From sequence record MF360958.1: a DNA stretch of 64,000 nt. One strand, given 5' to 3'. The translations under genes were made by a program, and so were the position numbers. Under the pieces are notes generated by a model. The model was not told where the DNA came from and searched no databases. It worked only from the letters and a program-made list of their open reading frames with translations. Of the stretch, positions 42-25,053 are shown in pieces; the first letter of the stretch is position 1, and every line of letters begins with the position of its first letter.

Positions 42-1004
42 ATGAAATACTATACTGTTTATAAAATAAAAAATAAAATCAATGATAAAATTTATATAGG
101 TTGTCATAAGACTGAAAATCTCGATGATAACTATATGGGATCTGGTATATATTTACGAAGGGCCATAGACAAATATGGTATAGATAATTTTGAAAAACGC
201 ATTATGTTTGTATATGACAATCCATATGATATGTTTTCAAAGGAGGCAGAAATAGTTACCGAGAGCTTTGTAGAAAGAAAAGATAATTATAATTTAAAAA
301 TTGGAGGCATGGGTGGATTTGATTATATAAACAGAAATAAATTAGGATTAATTGGATTTTGGAATTATTGGAATAATTTAACCAGTGAACAATTAGAACG
401 ACATATTCAATTATCAAGACAGGGAGGATTTAAAACATTAAAAGATAGAACAGGCTTGTTTTCAAAAAAATCTATTGAAAATAGAATTTCATCTATTAGA
501 AAAAATAATGAAAATTGGACTTTTGGCGGAATGAAGCATTCCAAAAAAAGTAAAGAAAAAATGTCTAATAGTGCTAAAAAACGTTTGAAAGATCCTATGA
601 AACATTCTCAATATGGCACTATGTGGATCTATTCATTAGATGAAAAACGTGCTAAAAAAATAAAAAGAACAGATAATATACCTAATAATTGTATTGTCGG
701 ACGTAAACCTAAAAAACAAAATAACCATAATAAAAATCCTAAATGTAAAACATGTAGTAATACAACTAGCACATTTAGATCGAGGTATTGTGAAAATTGT
801 AAAAAACTTAGAAATTATCAAAGAAAAGGATATAATAAAATAGATTTTATATCTAGAAAGCATAATATAATTGAAGGAAGTGTATCAAAAAATAAAGATT
901 TTATTAAAGAATGTATTTCTAACAATATTCCAAAAAATAATATTTTAAAATTTTTAAATTGTAATAATTCAGGAGGAAATTATAATATTATTAAAAATTT
1001 ATAA
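42..1004 (+). CDS. GIY-YIG (Seg-like) free-standing homing endonuclease with NUMOD3 motif and C-terminal Cys cluster
   Basis: N-terminal YTVYKIKNKINDKIYIG, YMGSG and YNLKIGG motifs; NUMOD3-like KHSKKSKEKMS; CxxC...CxxC near the C-terminus. Confidence 0.9.
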   Translation: MKYYTVYKIKNKINDKIYIGCHKTENLDDNYMGSGIYLRRAIDKYGIDNFEKRIMFVYDNPYDMFSKEAEIVTESFVERKDNYNLKIGGMGGFDYINRNKLGLIGFWNYWNNLTSEQLERHIQLSRQGGFKTLKDRTGLFSKKSIENRISSIRKNNENWTFGGMKHSKKSKEKMSNSAKKRLKDPMKHSQYGTMWIYSLDEKRAKKIKRTDNIPNNCIVGRKPKKQNNHNKNPKCKTCSNTTSTFRSRYCENCKKLRNYQRKGYNKIDFISRKHNIIEGSVSKNKDFIKECISNNIPKNNILKFLNCNNSGGNYNIIKNL

Positions 1005-4913: not shown

Positions 4914-4942
4914 TTGACATTAACTTAATAATATATTATCAT
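4914..4942 (+). promoter_or_regulatory. sigma70-type promoter upstream of the 278-nt tRNA-like RNA
   Basis: TTGACA(4914-4919)-N17-TATCAT(4937-4942). Confidence 0.7.
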
Positions 4943-5011
4943 GTTTATATGTTGTGGCATGGCGGGTAAGCCCTCAAGATACTTTTAAATGCTTGGAAAC
5001 CGCCTTATAAT

Positions 5012-5289
5012 CTGCTAGTAATGCTCAAAGCGAAAGGGATAGTTTAAAACACTCTCATACTAATATGATCGTGGAAGAAAAATGGTAACATAAAGCAACG
5101 ACCATGTTTAGGGTATCACCCCGCCGACCAGAGCGTATCTGGCAGGCTTTATGGTGACATTGGACTGAAGTGATCAGAATGTGTGATGAAGATTCAAATT
5201 TGAACGAGTAGCGTGGTAGAGCTTGCGCGACACCCTAAACATGGTCTTTTACGCGCAGGTTGATGGTTCGAGTCCATCCTAGCAGGCCA
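5012..5289 (+). ncRNA. 278-nt tRNA-scaffolded ncRNA with ~190-nt D-loop insertion and 22-nt anticodon-position loop
   Basis: Acceptor CTGCTAG(5012-5018)/CTAGCAG(5279-5285)+G+CCA; T-arm GATGG-TTCGAGT-CCATC; D-stem GCTC(5023-5026)/GAGC(5219-5222); stem GCGCG/CGCGC; variable loop AGGTT. Confidence 0.8.
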
Positions 5290-5309
5290 AATTTATTATG
5301 GAGTGATTT

Positions 5310-5672: not shown

Positions 5673-6123
5673 ATTTGACTATTAAGAATCGAACCTTCAT
5701 ACTGTATAGAACAAATAGGACTTAATTATGAAAGTAGTTTTCACAATATTAACACTCTTCCTGTTCTTTTTTGGAATGAGTATGTTTGGATTCTATGTTG
5801 AATATGACTCATTTGCAGCCATTGATGCTCAGCATTTTGTTCAATCCTGTCTTATAGCTGTAGTGGGTCTTTTATTTTCATGGCTAGTAAGTGCTATATT
5901 TTAAAACTATAATTAGGATATAAATATGTCAGATGTATTAACAATTTTTTGTTTCGGAGACTCCATGACAGCAACTGAATGGTCTATAAATAATGTTAAT
6001 AAAGGGGAATTTATTAGTTCAATATTTATATCATTTGTAGCAACTTGTTTTGTCTGGGAAACACTGTTAGAAGATTATTCTAAATACGTTGATAAAGATT
6101 AAAAAATCAACATCAAAAAATTC

Positions 6124-6160
6124 TTGACAATTGAGCATTTTTTCAGTAACATTATAAATA
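6124..6160 (+). promoter_or_regulatory. tandem sigma70 and T4-late-like promoter of the leader/tRNA operon
   Basis: TTGACA(6124-6129)-N17-TAACAT(6147-6152), followed by TATAAATA(6153-6160). Confidence 0.75.
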
Positions 6161-6196
6161 AGATAAACAAACGAATTAAACATTAAGGTAATTATT

Positions 6197-6283
6197 ATGC
6201 GTACTAACACAACAGTTAATCAGTATCAACTACAACAACTACCACTGGTTCTCTATCCCTATAATGGAGGGAAGGGCTGTTGA
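6197..6283 (+). CDS. attenuator leader peptide MRTNTTVNQYQLQQLPLVLYPYNGGKGC (28 aa; below the ORF-track cutoff)
   Basis: AAGGT RBS 7 nt upstream of ATG; control codons CAG TAT CAA CTA CAA CAA CTA CCA CTG GTT CTC TAT CCC TAT; the 3' end encodes attenuator segments 1 and 2. Confidence 0.85.
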   Translation: MRTNTTVNQYQLQQLPLVLYPYNGGKGC

Positions 6284-6345
6284 CGTGCGTGTAATATAAA
6301 CATGCAACGAATTCAAAAAGCCCTTCCAATTGGAAGGGCTTTTTT
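6251..6345 (+). promoter_or_regulatory. transcription attenuator: protector 1:2, antiterminator 2:3, terminator 3:4
   Basis: 1:2 CTCT-a-TCCCT(6251-6260)/AGGGAAGGG(6268-6276); 2:3 GGAAGGGCT(6270-6278)/AGCCCTTCC(6319-6327); 3:4 AAAAAGCCCTTCCA/TGGAAGGGCTTTTT plus U-run. Confidence 0.85.
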
Positions 6346-6365
6346 ATTGGGTTTTAGAAAATTTC

Positions 6366-6450
6366 GGGGATGTGGTGGAATTGGGATACACGGTTGCCTT
6401 AGAAGTAACTGCCTTCGGGCTTGGGAGTTCGAGTCTCCCCATCCCCACCA
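6366..6450 (+). tRNA. tRNA-Leu(TAG)
   Basis: GGGGATG/CATCCCC acceptor, GTTGC-CTTAGAA-GTAAC anticodon arm, long variable arm, encoded CCA. Confidence 0.95.
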
Positions 6451-6490
6451 AAACAATTGAGAAAGAAAGAAGTATAGAGAAATAAAGAAA

Positions 6491-7018
6491 ATGATAAAAG
6501 AAGAAGAAATTTGGAAAGATGTTGATGATTATCCAGAATATTTTATGATCAGTTCTTTTGGTAGAGTATGGTCGAAAAGAACTAATAAAATATTAAAGCA
6601 AACAATTGGAAAAACAGGTTATCCAGTAATATCTTCTAAAATAGGTGGTAGAAAAGGTAAATCAATTTGTAAAAAAGTTCATCGTTGGGTTGCTAATGCA
6701 TTTATAGATAATTTAAACAATAGATCCTGTGTTAATCATATCGATGGGAATAAAACGAATAATTATTGGAAAAATCTTGAATGGTGTACGTACAGTGAGA
6801 ACACAAAACATGCTTATAAGAACAATTTAATTGAAGCCAAATGTGGCGAAGAACATTCTTCATCAGTTTTAAGTTTAGATTTTATTAAACAGATAGAAAA
6901 TGAATACGTGCCATATTCTAAAACAAATGGATTAAGAGCTTTAGCAAGAAAATATAATGTAAAACATAATACATTATCAAATGCCTTAAACAATGTGAGT
7001 AAATATTACGGGAAGTAG
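6491..7018 (+). CDS. NUMOD4-HNH free-standing homing endonuclease inside the tRNA operon
   Basis: EIWKDV..Y.ISSFGRV NUMOD4; VHRWVA.AFI..VNHIDGNKTNN..NLEW HNH; last codons overlap tRNA-Pro. Confidence 0.92.
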   Translation: MIKEEEIWKDVDDYPEYFMISSFGRVWSKRTNKILKQTIGKTGYPVISSKIGGRKGKSICKKVHRWVANAFIDNLNNRSCVNHIDGNKTNNYWKNLEWCTYSENTKHAYKNNLIEAKCGEEHSSSVLSLDFIKQIENEYVPYSKTNGLRALARKYNVKHNTLSNALNNVSKYYGK

Positions 7019-7084
7019 CTCAAGTGGGAGAGCACGCGGTTTGGGACCGCGAGGTTGGGGGATCGTGACCCTCCTTCCCGACCA
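7009..7084 (+). tRNA. tRNA-Pro(TGG)
   Basis: CGGGAAG/CTTCCCG acceptor, CGCGG-TTTGGGA-CCGCG, CCA; atypical T-loop ATCGTGA. Confidence 0.92.
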
Positions 7085-7098
7085 GACATGTAAGTAGT

Positions 7099-7176
7099 AG
7101 CTGACTGAAGGGAATTGGTATACCTTTCTGATCGAGAGTCAGAAGCGTCCCGGTTCAAGTCCGGGGTCAGCTACCA
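7099..7176 (+). tRNA. atypical tRNA with anticodon GAG (Leu decoding), C33 and short variable loop
   Basis: AGCTGAC/GTCAGCT acceptor +A+CCA; AAGG/CCTT D-stem; TCTGA-TCGAGAG-TCAGA; CCCGG-TTCAAGT-CCGGG. Confidence 0.75.
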
Positions 7177-7190
7177 ACATTTAGGAAAAT

Positions 7191-7276
7191 GGAGCGGCTG
7201 GGCACACTAGGGGAGCCCATCGGACTGTAAATTCGACGCGAAAGCTGTATAGGTTCGACTCCTATCCGCTCCACCA
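7191..7276 (+). tRNA. tRNA-Tyr(GTA)
   Basis: GGAGCGG/CCGCTCC acceptor, TCGGA-CTGTAAA-TTCGA, variable arm, CCA. Confidence 0.93.
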
Positions 7277-7317
7277 TTTTTTAATAGCATTATTGTTAAT
7301 AATGCTATTGCAGAGTT

Positions 7318-7472
7318 TAGGATGTAGCTGACATTGGTATAGGCGCATGGGTGGTTGACCATGTTGAGGATTACGCAACGGTAACAGGTTAGTGGCAATA
7401 TACTAGTTAAGTTGGCATTGATACTACCAATACGCGCCTCACTTGTGGGTTCGATTCCCACCATCCTAACCA
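7318..7472 (+). ncRNA. 155-nt tRNA-like RNA with 8-nt anticodon loop and ~80-nt variable region
   Basis: TAGGATG/CATCCTA+A+CCA; T-arm GTGGG-TTCGATT-CCCAC; CATGG-GTGGTTGA-CCATG; TGAGG(7365-7369)/CCTCA(7437-7441) closes the insertion. Confidence 0.75.
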
Positions 7473-7537
7473 AACATTATAGAGGTAAAATATGAAATAC
7501 CATATGGAAGAATGGGAAACAGGTTCTAAAGAATAAT

Positions 7538-7614
7538 AGGGGAGTCGCCAAGTGGTCTAAGGCGCTAGGTTTTGATCTTAGTATGCGGAAGTTCGAATCT
7601 TCCCTCCCCTGCCA
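7538..7614 (+). tRNA. tRNA-Gln(TTG)
   Basis: AGGGGAG/CTCCCCT+G+CCA; CTAGG-TTTTGAT-CTTAG. Confidence 0.93.
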
Positions 7615-7617
7615 AAC

Positions 7618-7645
7618 AAAGCCCTCTCAATTGAGAGGGCTTTTT
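7618..7645 (+). terminator. intrinsic terminator ending the tRNA operon
   Basis: AAAGCCCTCTCAATTGAGAGGGCTTTTT perfect palindrome plus U-run. Confidence 0.9.
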
Positions 7646-8816: not shown

Positions 8817-8831
8817 TATTTTTAAACAATG

Positions 8832-8973
8832 GGCTGTAGCTGCGGAATCTTTAATTGATAGCGTGATGTGAGTTAAAGATTATGGCCAAAGCGAGACTGT
8901 CAGTATTATTTCCTAATCACGCCTCTAGGTTTAATACTGACGGTTGAGGGGTTCGAATCCTCTACAGCCGCCA
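8832..8973 (+). ncRNA. 142-nt tRNA-like RNA with two long hairpins whose loops are complementary
   Basis: GGCTGTAG/CTACAGCC+G+CCA; TTCGAAT T-loop; AATCTTTAA/TTAAAGATT and CTGTCAGTATTA/TAATACTGACGG hairpins; loop GCGTGAT(8861-8867) complementary to ATCACGC(8916-8922). Confidence 0.75.
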
Positions 8974-9016
8974 AATTTTAAATAACGCTGATAAACTCTT
9001 ATTAAAAGGTATATGT

Positions 9017-10108
9017 ATGTCACAACTTAAAACATCGTTTTCTGATCTTGATACTATTGTTAAAGTTATTCAATATGATGAAGATAGTGTTACTGACTAT
9101 CTGAAACCAGCGGTATATTCAGTAGATTACAACTTGCTAGATGGATTTTTCCTTAATAAGCATAGTTCTCATTTTGAACAACCAGATAAAGTGTACGGGA
9201 AAATTCATCGTCGCGTTGGAAAAATTATTCATTCATATAGCAACAGCGAAAGTTCTTTTGGTGTTTTACTGAGTGGGTCAAAAGGTTCAGGAAAAACAAT
9301 GACCTCTTGTATTACAGCCAATCGCTGTATTCATGAACTAGGTCTTCCTATTATTTTGGTACAAAATGAATTTAATGCTTTTGAACTTTCTTCTTTTATT
9401 CAAAAGCTTGGCGAAGTCGTTGTATTTTTTGATGAATTTGGCAAAAACTTTAAAAATGAAGATGGAAATCAAAATGGTCTTTTAACACTATTTGATGGTA
9501 CTGGTTCCGATAAGCGTCTAGTTATTCTCACGGAAAATAATGTTTGGGATATTAATAACTTCATGCTAGAACGGCCCGGAAGAATTCACTATCATTTTCG
9601 TCATGATAAACTTGATGAAGAAATGGTTCGAGAATATTGTTCTGATTATGATATTCCTGAAAATAAAATTGAACAAATTTGTCTTCTTCGTGAATCATCA
9701 ATGGATTTTTCTTTTGATACACTGCAAGCGGTCGTTACTGAATACTTAAAATATCCTGATGATATCTTTTCACTTGTAGAAGATTTGAATATCGAACAAC
9801 CTATTTCTATGTCTCAAAAAATGTTGGAAATTACAGAAATTACTGATCAGCAAGGAAATTCAAGAACACTATGGAATAAACGTCATAAAACAAACAATGT
9901 TGTTTTTCCAGAAGGATTTTCTGAGACAGAACTTTTTGTCAATGATGTTGATGAACAAGATTGGAGAATTGTCTTATTAGATTGCGGATCTATCGTAAAA
10001 CGAGAAGGTAATAACTACGTATTCCATACATCATTTGATAATGATCAAACAGAACATTTAGTTATTAAAGGTAGATACTATCAAGATAATTTTAAAAAAT
10101 CGTTTTAA
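9017..10108 (+). CDS. AAA+ family ATPase
   Basis: Walker A GSKGSGKT, Walker B VVVFFDE, ERPGR arginine finger. Confidence 0.88.
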   Translation: MSQLKTSFSDLDTIVKVIQYDEDSVTDYLKPAVYSVDYNLLDGFFLNKHSSHFEQPDKVYGKIHRRVGKIIHSYSNSESSFGVLLSGSKGSGKTMTSCITANRCIHELGLPIILVQNEFNAFELSSFIQKLGEVVVFFDEFGKNFKNEDGNQNGLLTLFDGTGSDKRLVILTENNVWDINNFMLERPGRIHYHFRHDKLDEEMVREYCSDYDIPENKIEQICLLRESSMDFSFDTLQAVVTEYLKYPDDIFSLVEDLNIEQPISMSQKMLEITEITDQQGNSRTLWNKRHKTNNVVFPEGFSETELFVNDVDEQDWRIVLLDCGSIVKREGNNYVFHTSFDNDQTEHLVIKGRYYQDNFKKSF

Positions 10109-10117
10109 TCATGCAAA

Positions 10118-10248
10118 GTTCGGGTAGCTTAAAAGGGTGCAATCGGTTTAGATGAGATCCATGGTATCATTTATTCTTGATTACATCGACAAAGCGGACA
10201 GGACATAGGCCCCCTGTCATGGTGGTTCGAATCCATCCCCGAGCACCA
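10118..10248 (+). ncRNA. 131-nt tRNA-like RNA lacking a canonical anticodon loop
   Basis: GTTCGGG/CCCGAGC+A+CCA; GGTGG-TTCGAAT-CCATC; hairpin GACAGG/CCTGTC before the T-arm. Confidence 0.7.
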
Positions 10249-10261
10249 TACAATAGAACGA

Positions 10262-24855: not shown

Positions 24856-25053
24856 ATGATTAATACATTCAAATGCAACAGTAATGAATGGATTCATAAT
24901 AAAAAATACAATTCATGGCGTCATCGAACAAAACGCAAAATTATCTTTAATCCTATACTACGTTTTGTTCAAGGTTATCCTTTTAATAAACGTCCTTTTA
25001 TTATCGCAAGTATTTGTGATAATAAAAATGGTAGACCTTTTCATACTGGTTAA
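24856..25053 (+). CDS. hypothetical protein
   Basis: ORF track; plausible composition. Confidence 0.5.
   Translation: MINTFKCNSNEWIHNKKYNSWRHRTKRKIIFNPILRFVQGYPFNKRPFIIASICDNKNGRPFHTG

Follow-up and report, generated by a model that had tools for sequence, protein, structure and literature searches.

Putative leader-peptide attenuators upstream of tRNA operons in Salicola phage SCTP-2 and other phages

Introduction

The leaders of the amino acid biosynthetic operons of Gammaproteobacteria (trpL, hisL, pheL, leuL, thrL and ilvL) combine a promoter, a short open reading frame (ORF) with a run of regulatory codons, the alternative pairings 1:2, 2:3 and 3:4, and an intrinsic terminator. The same layout was found upstream of a transfer RNA (tRNA) operon of Salicola phage SCTP-2, within a window of 64,000 nucleotides (nt) that matches bases 310,001-374,000 of the sequence record MF360958.1 with 100% identity. 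Judging from its sequence, this element, here called leader J, is very likely a ribosome-mediated (leader-peptide) transcription attenuator that gates the tRNA operon and one of four paralogous cassettes of this kind in SCTP-2. We describe its anatomy, its alternative pairings, the match between its codons and the tRNAs behind it, and the covariation of the two across paralogues and other phages. Translation of the leader, we infer, controls read-through into the tRNA genes.

As in biosynthetic attenuators, the stop codon of the SCTP-2 leaders is placed such that a terminating ribosome masks region 2. Sensing of several amino acids is also known from the classical systems, with thrL responding to Thr and Ile and ilvL to Ile, Leu and Val, and the host genus Salicola belongs to the Gammaproteobacteria, the same class in which the classical leader-attenuated operons are found. 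The SCTP-2 leaders differ from these systems in that the gated genes are tRNAs and not enzymes, with a product that directly supplies the sensed decoding, and in that up to five or more codon families would be sensed per leader. Region 2 is moreover part of the ORF, the element is carried by a phage in four tailored copies, and leader J is no sequence member of any Rfam leader family.

Two further systems act on the translation apparatus or read tRNA status. In Escherichia coli the leader pheM, which is rich in cognate codons, controls pheST, encoding the Phe-tRNA synthetase. Both pheST and the SCTP-2 operons contribute to translation, but the pheST product is an enzyme, only one amino acid is sensed and no tRNA gene is involved. 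T-box elements bind uncharged tRNA directly without translation and control synthetase and amino acid genes, mainly in Firmicutes. T-boxes and SCTP-2 leaders are alike in being transcription attenuators that read tRNA status through competition between antiterminator and terminator, but the T-box needs no translation whereas the SCTP-2 leader would work through the ribosome.

Little has been described of the regulation of phage tRNA genes, which tend to be regarded as early genes with constitutive expression. The tRNAs of phage T5 counter the PARIS and retron systems. Phage tRNAs have been discussed as a means of codon compensation or as substitutes for host tRNAs cleaved by defence nucleases (PMC5852040; PMC10264068), and for SCTP-2, too, these would be reasons for needing particular tRNAs at particular times. 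A search of these two articles, for promoter and terminator in the former and for promoter and attenuation in the latter, gave no mention of the regulation of phage tRNA genes. A preliminary description of the window, made from its sequence, had stated that no leader-peptide attenuator was known for phage tRNA genes, and our full-text literature searches agree in that no prior description of such attenuators before tRNA genes was found.

In the work of Barth et al. 2021 on the VapC4 toxin of Mycobacterium tuberculosis, the loss of tRNA-Cys is reported to be read out by stalling on small ORFs. This is the same logic that the preliminary description had proposed for leader J, in which loss of a specific tRNA leads to stalling. 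Leaderless polycysteine short ORFs of mycobacteria act as codon-run attenuators of operon expression (bioRxiv 10.1101/834739). Being leaderless, these ORFs resemble leader E of SCTP-2, which probably is leaderless too. The mycobacterial elements differ from the SCTP-2 leaders in sensing one amino acid and in controlling metabolic or stress genes with no tRNA genes gated, and they act by translation-coupled operon expression and not by a demonstrated 2:3/3:4 switch.

New in SCTP-2 are the tRNAs as regulated genes, the product closing the loop, the four differently programmed copies and the possible sensing of up to five or more codon families per leader. Also new is the occurrence of the element in phages of several lineages. 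If the interpretation is true, it represents direct product feedback on decoding capacity, unlike the classical use of attenuation for amino acid synthesis. It would further help to decide between codon compensation and the replacement of tRNAs lost to defence systems as the role of phage tRNAs. Short unannotated ORFs upstream of phage tRNA arrays therefore merit annotation, and the cassettes, as natural modular sensors of the availability of specific tRNAs, might be reused as reporters.

Results and Discussion

Leader J and the tRNA operon behind it

SCTP-2 is a jumbo myovirus of 440,001 bp of Italian saltern origin. Its major capsid protein shares about 61% identity with the counterparts in Rak2-like jumbo phages. 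The record MF360958 annotates protein genes only, and the leader J ORF is absent from the annotation. ARAGORN predicted 24 tRNAs in the genome, mostly located at 296.7-331 kb. Unless stated otherwise, positions are those of the window. Leader J consists of the following features:

6124..6152, + strand: sigma-70-type promoter, TTGACA-17 nt-TAACAT, with 10/12 consensus matches
6185..6189, + strand: Shine-Dalgarno (SD)-like AAGGT, 7 nt upstream of the ATG and the same in leader I
6197..6283, + strand: leader ORF J, 28 codons plus TGA, unannotated in MF360958
6221..6262, + strand: control codons 9-22, CAG TAT CAA CTA CAA CAA CTA CCA CTG GTT CTC TAT CCC TAT
6253..6260, + strand: region 1, pairing with region 2 in untranslated RNA (minimum free energy (MFE) folds)
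6268..6278, + strand: region 2 (AGGGAAGGGCT), in the final sense codons and 2 nt short of the stop codon
6279..6308, + strand: spacer hairpin inside the 2:3 antiterminator (nascent-RNA fold)
6315..6327, + strand: region 3 (AAAAAGCCCTTCC), forming the terminator 5' arm
6332..6345, + strand: region 4, forming the terminator 3' arm, with the T-run

All elements listed in the preliminary description were recovered here at their given positions. The promoter lies exactly where it had been placed (TTGACA at 6124-6129, a spacer of 17 nt, TAACAT at 6147-6152), AAGGT is present at 6185-6189 as the ribosome binding site, the 28-codon ORF encodes the peptide MRTNTTVNQYQLQQLPLVLYPYNGGKGC, and codons 9-22 read as previously given. 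A promoter module of 37 nt (TTGACAATTGAGCATTTTTTCAGTAACATTATAAATA) was found genome-wide only before leaders J and I. The MFE fold of J holds the 1:2 hairpin (6253-6260/6268-6275, differing by at most 2 nt from the earlier coordinates) plus the terminator, with a z-score of -5.4 against shuffled sequences. When a masked ribosome sits upstream, region 2 folds with region 3, and the claimed 2:3 pairing of GGAAGGGCT (6270-6278) with AGCCCTTCC (6319-6327) is exact over 9 base pairs (bp). The last 9 nt of region 2 recur exactly at the beginning of the terminator 3' arm. The terminator, likewise verified, has a stem of 13 bp (6315-6327/6332-6344) with a T-run to 6345, 20 nt upstream of tRNA-Leu(UAG), and the isolated hairpin was calculated at -19.8 kcal/mol.

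The operon behind the leader contains the five tRNAs named earlier, Leu(UAG), Pro(UGG), an atypical one with anticodon GAG, Tyr(GUA) and Gln(UUG), together with three features that had been missed:

6366..6450, + strand: tRNA-Leu(UAG)
6491..7018, + strand: HNH/NUMOD4 homing-endonuclease ORF within the operon (previously missed)
7009..7084, + strand: tRNA-Pro(UGG)
7099..7176, + strand: tRNA with anticodon GAG, class-I-shaped, without long variable arm
7191..7276, + strand: tRNA-Tyr(GUA)
7319..7473, + strand: tRNA-like gene in which about 88 nt of inserted sequence replace the anticodon loop (previously missed)
7538..7614, + strand: tRNA-Gln(UUG)
7618..7643, + strand: operon-final terminator (previously missed)

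The GAG tRNA at 7099-7176 is nominally a tRNA-Leu of 78 nt, and similarly short genes annotated as 'tRNA-Leu(GAG)' are present in Sinorhizobium phage Phosso (L023:19951-20028 and 24940-25016).

Of the 14 control codons of J, 13 encode Leu (CUN), Pro, Tyr or Gln, which is the single maximum among the 879,920 windows of 14 codons obtained from the six frames of the 440-kb genome. The 2,460 other small ORFs starting with ATG had at most 11 such codons per 14-codon window. The motif GGAAGGGCT was found 3 times in the window against 0.11 expected, and all 3 copies are situated within leader J, in region 2, region 3 (reverse complement) and region 4. This motif count and the unique codon run exclude chance. 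The previous emphasis on all four Leu codons of J being CUN was factually correct, but the observation is weak when taken alone (p ~0.06), because CUN makes up 49% of the Leu codons of SCTP-2.

The CA-rich run of J also spells six Thr codons in frame +2, which had likewise been missed before, and a poly-Thr reading of this frame was rejected as it has no start codon. Matches of J to the Rfam families Thr_leader (RF00506, 33.4 bits) and Phe_leader (RF01859, 31.1 bits) remained below the gathering score of 55, and their alignment depends on the terminator and the CA-rich run. The match to Thr_leader can thus be explained by the Thr codons of frame +2 plus the terminator, and membership in this family was rejected since the score is under the gathering threshold. 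Apart from weak look-alikes of leaders and terminators, no T-box or other cis-regulatory Rfam family was detected in 6100-6400 at E values up to 10.

Four paralogous cassettes in SCTP-2

Paralogues of leader J were found by reading the 260 nt upstream of each tRNA cluster. The pattern CCCTTCC-N3-6-GGAAGGG has exactly four sites in the 440-kb genome, all on the + strand and 21-34 nt upstream of a tRNA cluster, with a loop of N4/5 in the four terminators. Each of these terminator motifs is preceded by an ORF of 28-44 codons. The sequence pieces L007 and L008 used for some coordinates are parts of MF360958 (L007:48729 is record position 298729 and L008:8741 is record position 308741). The four leaders are:

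Leader A, record 296535-296669, + strand: MNSNTMNNNVNTSINEMNISVDHNIAMHNDHINNDIDMSWRVLI, followed by tRNAs Asp, His, Met, Ile
Leader E, record 303694-303825, + strand: MINASTTNIAKSMIGKAAKVSFKGGFVWAFSFKKASGQRGFLE, followed by tRNAs Lys, Phe, Trp
Leader I, record 308741-308854 (L008:8741-8854), + strand: MNALTRTFTLTITTRSSERTSEVRSTERETVGERKGV, followed by tRNAs Ser(UGA), Glu, Thr
Leader J, record 316197-316283, + strand: MRTNTTVNQYQLQQLPLVLYPYNGGKGC, followed by tRNAs Leu, Pro, GAG, Tyr, Gln

Leaders J and I share TTGACA-17-TAACAT and the SD AAGGT, and leader A has the SD AAGGA. The promoter of leader E (TTGACA-16-TAGAAT) stops 7 nt upstream of the ATG and no SD is present (L008:3659-3694), so that its mRNA is probably leaderless. 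No promoter-like site was detected in the gap of 21-34 nt that separates each terminator from its first tRNA, nor does this gap leave space for one, and a promoter at this location was accordingly rejected.

Near-identical SD, terminator and post-terminator flanks are common to leaders I and J. The interiors of the two ORFs are different, and the conserved stretch right behind the ATG is translated in a different frame in each leader. Flanks that are kept while interiors and frames differ point to selection on the codon content and not on the peptide. In the evolution of the cassettes the switch has been conserved and the codon content rewritten, which speaks against a role of the peptides as such.

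The antiterminator/terminator switch

Each of the four SCTP-2 leaders shows complementarity between its final sense codons and the terminator 5' arm. Among 51 intrinsic terminators detected in the genome, those of cassettes I, A and E rank as the top 3 by upstream complementarity to the 5' arm, at a constant distance of 34-41 nt. Leader J is missing from this ranking due to the T-tail filter, and its region 2, scored separately, gave -19.7 and -21.0 kcal/mol. Duplexes between the 3' end of the ORF and region 3 with 10 nt of upstream flank ranged from -15.7 to -22.2 kcal/mol. Where A, E and I have GGGT/ACCC, J has GGGCT/AGCCC, and this change is present in regions 2, 3 and 4. The 2:3 helix is extended past the shared core by each leader's own sequence to 13 bp in A and 15 bp in E, and in A, E and J region 2 of a leader pairs best with region 3 of the same leader. 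In the four leaders the distance from the end of the G-rich core of region 2 to the stop codon is 2-11 nt.

Ribosome positions were represented in the folds by masking, for a lagging ribosome to 30 nt before the stop in a nascent RNA without region 4, and for a terminating ribosome to 10 nt past the stop. The lagging-ribosome mask produced the antiterminator in all four SCTP-2 cassettes, and the mask to 10 nt past the stop produced the terminator in all 12 leaders, i.e. the 4 of SCTP-2 and 8 from IMG/VR that are presented below. The two-state folding logic of the preliminary description accordingly holds in all leaders examined. Naked RNA of I and J folded into 1:2 plus terminator, while naked RNA of A and E folded into the antiterminator; the 1:2 hairpin is part of the MFE fold in I, J and all eight IMG/VR analogues.

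Codon content and downstream tRNAs

Cognate codons were assigned by standard wobble rules, with the background taken from the codon usage of 314 long ORFs. In a 4x4 matrix of leaders against tRNA sets the diagonal contains 17/43 (A), 12/42 (E), 15/36 (I) and 12/27 (J) cognate codons, and all 12 off-diagonal cells contain 0-4 codons. For J, the 12 of 27 codons that are cognate by strict wobble compare to a background of 13.9%. The amino acids concerned are Asp, His, Met, Ile and Asn in leader A, Lys, Phe and Trp in E, Ser, Glu and Thr in I, and Leu, Pro, Tyr and Gln in J. If all tRNAs as far as the following leader are included, the diagonal rises to 29/43 in A and 20/42 in E and remains at 15/36 in I and 12/27 in J. 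The region of leader A includes a tRNA-Asn(GUU) with a hairpin-forming insert of 45 nt inside the anticodon, detected by ARAGORN with introns allowed and by the Rfam tRNA model, which explains the 12 Asn codons of this leader. The Ser codons of leader E are all AGY (5/5) and tRNA-Ser(GCU) lies downstream, and those of leader I are mostly UCN with tRNA-Ser(UGA) downstream. A consensus promoter is located between leader E and the tRNAs Val, Ser(GCU) and Gly, which this leader may also govern.

Binomial p-values for the diagonal range from 7e-4 to 9e-6. About 1% of random small SCTP-2 ORFs reach similar values for some tRNA set; the binomial test thus exaggerates the significance for small ORFs in an AT-rich genome, and empirical and permutation tests were used instead. 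Against the approximately 2,460 small ORFs, the empirical p for the own tRNA set was 4e-4 to 8e-3 per leader, and the product over the four leaders was 1.6e-9 to 1e-11.

Leaders in other phages

A comparison of the leader with 50,697 phage records (megablast, blastn) matched SCTP-2 only, plus generic terminators, and the terminator pattern returned only unrelated terminators and no close SCTP-2 relative in IMG/VR and JGI metagenomes. The neighbouring proteins gp365, gp366 and gp384 were of little use as anchors for finding relatives. The four programmed copies within SCTP-2 and the leaders of other phages provide evidence that is independent of finding close relatives.

An IMG/VR scan for GGAAGGG-N25-55-CCCTTCC-N3-6-GGAAGGG matched a 115-kb contig of 60% GC, in which the ORF MTRFLSLPPKNFWRRYWRSEGGTGF ends in region 2. 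This ORF contains the run TGG CGC CGA TAC TGG CGT (W-R-R-Y-W-R) and is located directly before tRNA-Tyr, Trp and Arg(ACG), the first of 12 tRNAs in the 20.7 kb of this contig that were examined. A long imperfect hairpin ending in GGGGAGAGGTTTTTT (L156:9640-9733) was observed directly before tRNA-Arg(ACG) in the GC-rich contig and may represent a control element of another kind. A 201-kb AT-rich contig (L157) has an array of at least 15 tRNAs that is headed by a true sequence homologue of the I/J cassette. The codon match of this homologue is weak (p 0.02-0.04), and between it and the first tRNA lie about 430 nt that contain endonuclease remnants. This cassette supports an association with tRNA arrays, though not covariation. 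In bacterial genomes the pattern GGAAGGG..CCCTTCC..GGAAGGG gave at least 120 matches without association with tRNAs, as only one was near a tRNA and this one was unrelated.

A second scan of IMG/VR was blind to ORFs and required a T-run with a G/C-rich 5' flank 18-48 nt upstream of the common D-arm of tRNAs. At sites of the 33 loci found where a terminator precedes a tRNA, leaders were chosen as the longest ATG ORF of at least 20 codons with a 3' end able to pair with a terminator arm, which resulted in eight distinct leaders. Examples are MTSLTCNSNYFTSSFSNYGKTDQWGFA, followed by tRNAs Phe, Phe, Asn, Ser, Cys and Asn, MIQTLKHSKHFSSSSKWFTTIGVEVKLLCQV, followed by Arg, His, His, Phe, Phe, Ser, Lys x5 and Trp, and MMSRINTYYFKKSYKKYLIGIGNRMISS, followed by Lys, Lys, Val, Tyr and Tyr. 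In all eight, the stalled state folds into the antiterminator and the state at the stop into the terminator. Several have promoters of the TAnnTTTG type and no SD, which suggests Bacteroidota as hosts. The motif GTTCTTTGACAT or a variant is conserved between leader terminator and first tRNA in contigs of this Bacteroidota type (L163, L177, L178, L185, L189 and L190).

When the match to the own array was tested for the 12 leaders, 0 of 200,000 permutations reached the observed value. The permutation p was 2.5e-5 without the SCTP-2 leaders and 5e-5 for the leader set picked regardless of codon content. ATA codons accompany tRNA-Ile(UAU), showing that the synonymous choice follows the anticodon. 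Covariation between leader and tRNAs had been named beforehand as the comparison by which the proposal should be judged, and homologues were found to keep the ORF while their codons follow their own tRNA set. The attenuator interpretation is supported further by the paralogues and the eight leaders of other phages, which keep ORF, antiterminator and terminator before tRNAs.

Scanning for a terminator plus ORF before tRNAs detected no leaders in Erwinia phage Hallingskeid (Rak2-like), in Phosso, which has 42 tRNAs, in T5 and in XacN1. In T5 (annotated) and Hallingskeid (read from sequence) tRNAs are located directly behind promoters. T5.070 (L024:8628-8756), an ORF of 42 amino acids with six Cys in CxxC pairs just before the T5 tRNA-Cys, was considered as a leader and rejected in view of its missing terminator and its CxxC motifs. 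It probably encodes a zinc-ribbon protein.

Proposed mechanism and alternative explanations

According to the proposed mechanism, host RNA polymerase would start at the sigma-70-type promoter and a ribosome would translate the 28-codon leader, whose interior consists of codons for the operon's own tRNAs (Leu CUN, Pro, Tyr, Gln). Upon slow decoding the ribosome would lag, leaving region 2 (6268-6278) free to pair with the emerging region 3 (6319-6327). With 2:3 formed the terminator could not form, and polymerase would enter the tRNA genes. Upon fast decoding the ribosome would reach the UGA (6281-6283) and cover region 2, so that the 3:4 terminator would form and transcription would stop 20 nt before tRNA-Leu. 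As the operon products read the control codons, this would be direct product feedback, and the circuit would act as a codon-resolved homeostat of decoding capacity.

As natural trigger, supply-and-demand homeostasis of the phage tRNAs seems at least as likely as host anticodon nucleases. Such matching of supply and demand is plausible for a phage with a G+C content of 30.0%, given that the second phage infecting the same host genus has 56%. Host defences that cleave tRNAs would be compatible with the sequence features as trigger. In that case loss of a host tRNA to an anticodon nuclease or another depleting system would stall the ribosome on the matching codon and turn on the operon of replacement tRNAs as a counter-defence. 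A broader and more doubtful idea, which we put forward tentatively, is that such leaders form widespread and so far undescribed codon panels that monitor decoding family by family and combine the homeostat with an inducible counter-defence.

Several observations weigh against the attenuator interpretation. The antiterminator of A and E (13-15 bp) is more stable than the terminator, so that untranslated RNA should read through, unlike in classical super-attenuation. Leader E has no SD and its mRNA is probably leaderless. In J, a ribosome stalled on the last four control codons (6251-6262, overlapping region 1) would itself mask region 2, and therefore only codons 9-17 would antiterminate. Leader I has 6 of 36 codons for Arg of the CGN type (2.2% genome-wide) without an Arg tRNA in its operon. 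The leaders before very large arrays have individually weak codon matches (p 0.02-0.1), and the near-identity of the four SCTP-2 terminators could indicate a factor that recognizes the hairpin.

The leaders might alternatively be general sensors of translation that report ribosome availability, e.g. after host shut-off, with any slowing opening the operon and the codon match being secondary. The architecture would indeed respond to any ribosome delay, and where the array comprises 14-18 tRNAs the leaders include almost every amino acid, which masks specificity. We nevertheless regard this explanation as unlikely, as the SCTP-2 matrix is diagonal with depleted off-diagonal cells, synonymous choice tracks the anticodons (Ser AGY versus UCN, ATA with tRNA-Ile(UAU)) and the own-array permutation tests speak against it. 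Attenuation could also be mediated by a phage or host factor that binds the GGAAGGG/CCCTTCC hairpin in the manner of TRAP, PyrR or BglG, with the ORF being incidental. The four terminators are almost identical despite unrelated ORFs, and there is a sub-threshold Rfam match to PyrR (27 bits against a gathering score of 54). Terminator identity is, however, also explained by duplication, given that I and J share flanks, and the analogues in other phages keep the ORF, the copy of the 3' arm at its end and the terminator although their terminator sequences are unrelated. As it also leaves the covariation of codons and tRNAs unexplained, we consider a factor-mediated mechanism quite improbable.

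The leaders could finally be ordinary small genes with their own terminators, with tRNA synthesis depending on leaky read-through or on promoters located elsewhere and the codon match resulting from chance or low complexity. The CA-rich run does give biased codons in every frame, as in the six Thr codons of frame +2, and the roughly 1% of random small ORFs with similar enrichment for one of the four sets would fit this explanation. Yet the product of the empirical own-set p-values (1.6e-9 to 1e-11), the codon run of J as genome-wide maximum, the top-ranked complementarity of region 2 among the genome terminators and the recurrence of the layout in unrelated phages all contradict it, and the gap of 21-34 nt before the tRNAs leaves no room for a promoter, none having been found there. 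Small genes of this kind are therefore a highly improbable explanation, and the leader-peptide attenuator remains our preferred interpretation.

Other features of the tRNA regions

Several tRNA or tRNA-like genes have an anticodon loop that contains or adjoins an insert of 36-90 nt (record 298729-298850 and window positions 7319-7473, 8830-8975 and 10118-10250), and none of these genes is annotated in the record. A weak tRNA-like 'Arg(GCG)' lies 1.5 kb upstream of leader I (record 307176-307256). The stretch 4914-5295 comprises a near-consensus promoter (TTGACA-17-TATCAT, 4914-4942) and, behind it, a structured RNA of about 340 nt that is GC-rich and ends in a tRNA-like T-arm and acceptor (CTGCTAG...CTAGCAG). 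This RNA resembles a tRNA carrying an insert of about 200 nt, and an Rfam search gave no match.

Homing endonucleases crowd the tRNA region of SCTP-2 (window 42-1001 and 6491-7018; L008:7398-7958 and L008:9232-9921). Among the endonucleases of this region gp366 is GIY-YIG/NUMOD-like, and gp380, gp360 and gp365 are of the HNH type. The protein gp384 (9017-10108) is an AAA ATPase, and Marinobacter and Vreelandella have proteins that are 48-53% identical to it. As a protein search found no phage relatives of gp384, these bacterial matches suggest acquisition from bacteria related to the host.

SCTP-2 also encodes two RNA ligases, gp50 and gp464. In the 201-kb contig an ORF that by eye resembles an RtcB-type RNA ligase (L035:625-1890) adjoins the tRNA array. 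Two contigs contain tRNAs with a CUA anticodon (L157:17353-17427 and L159:11986), which are possible amber suppressors.

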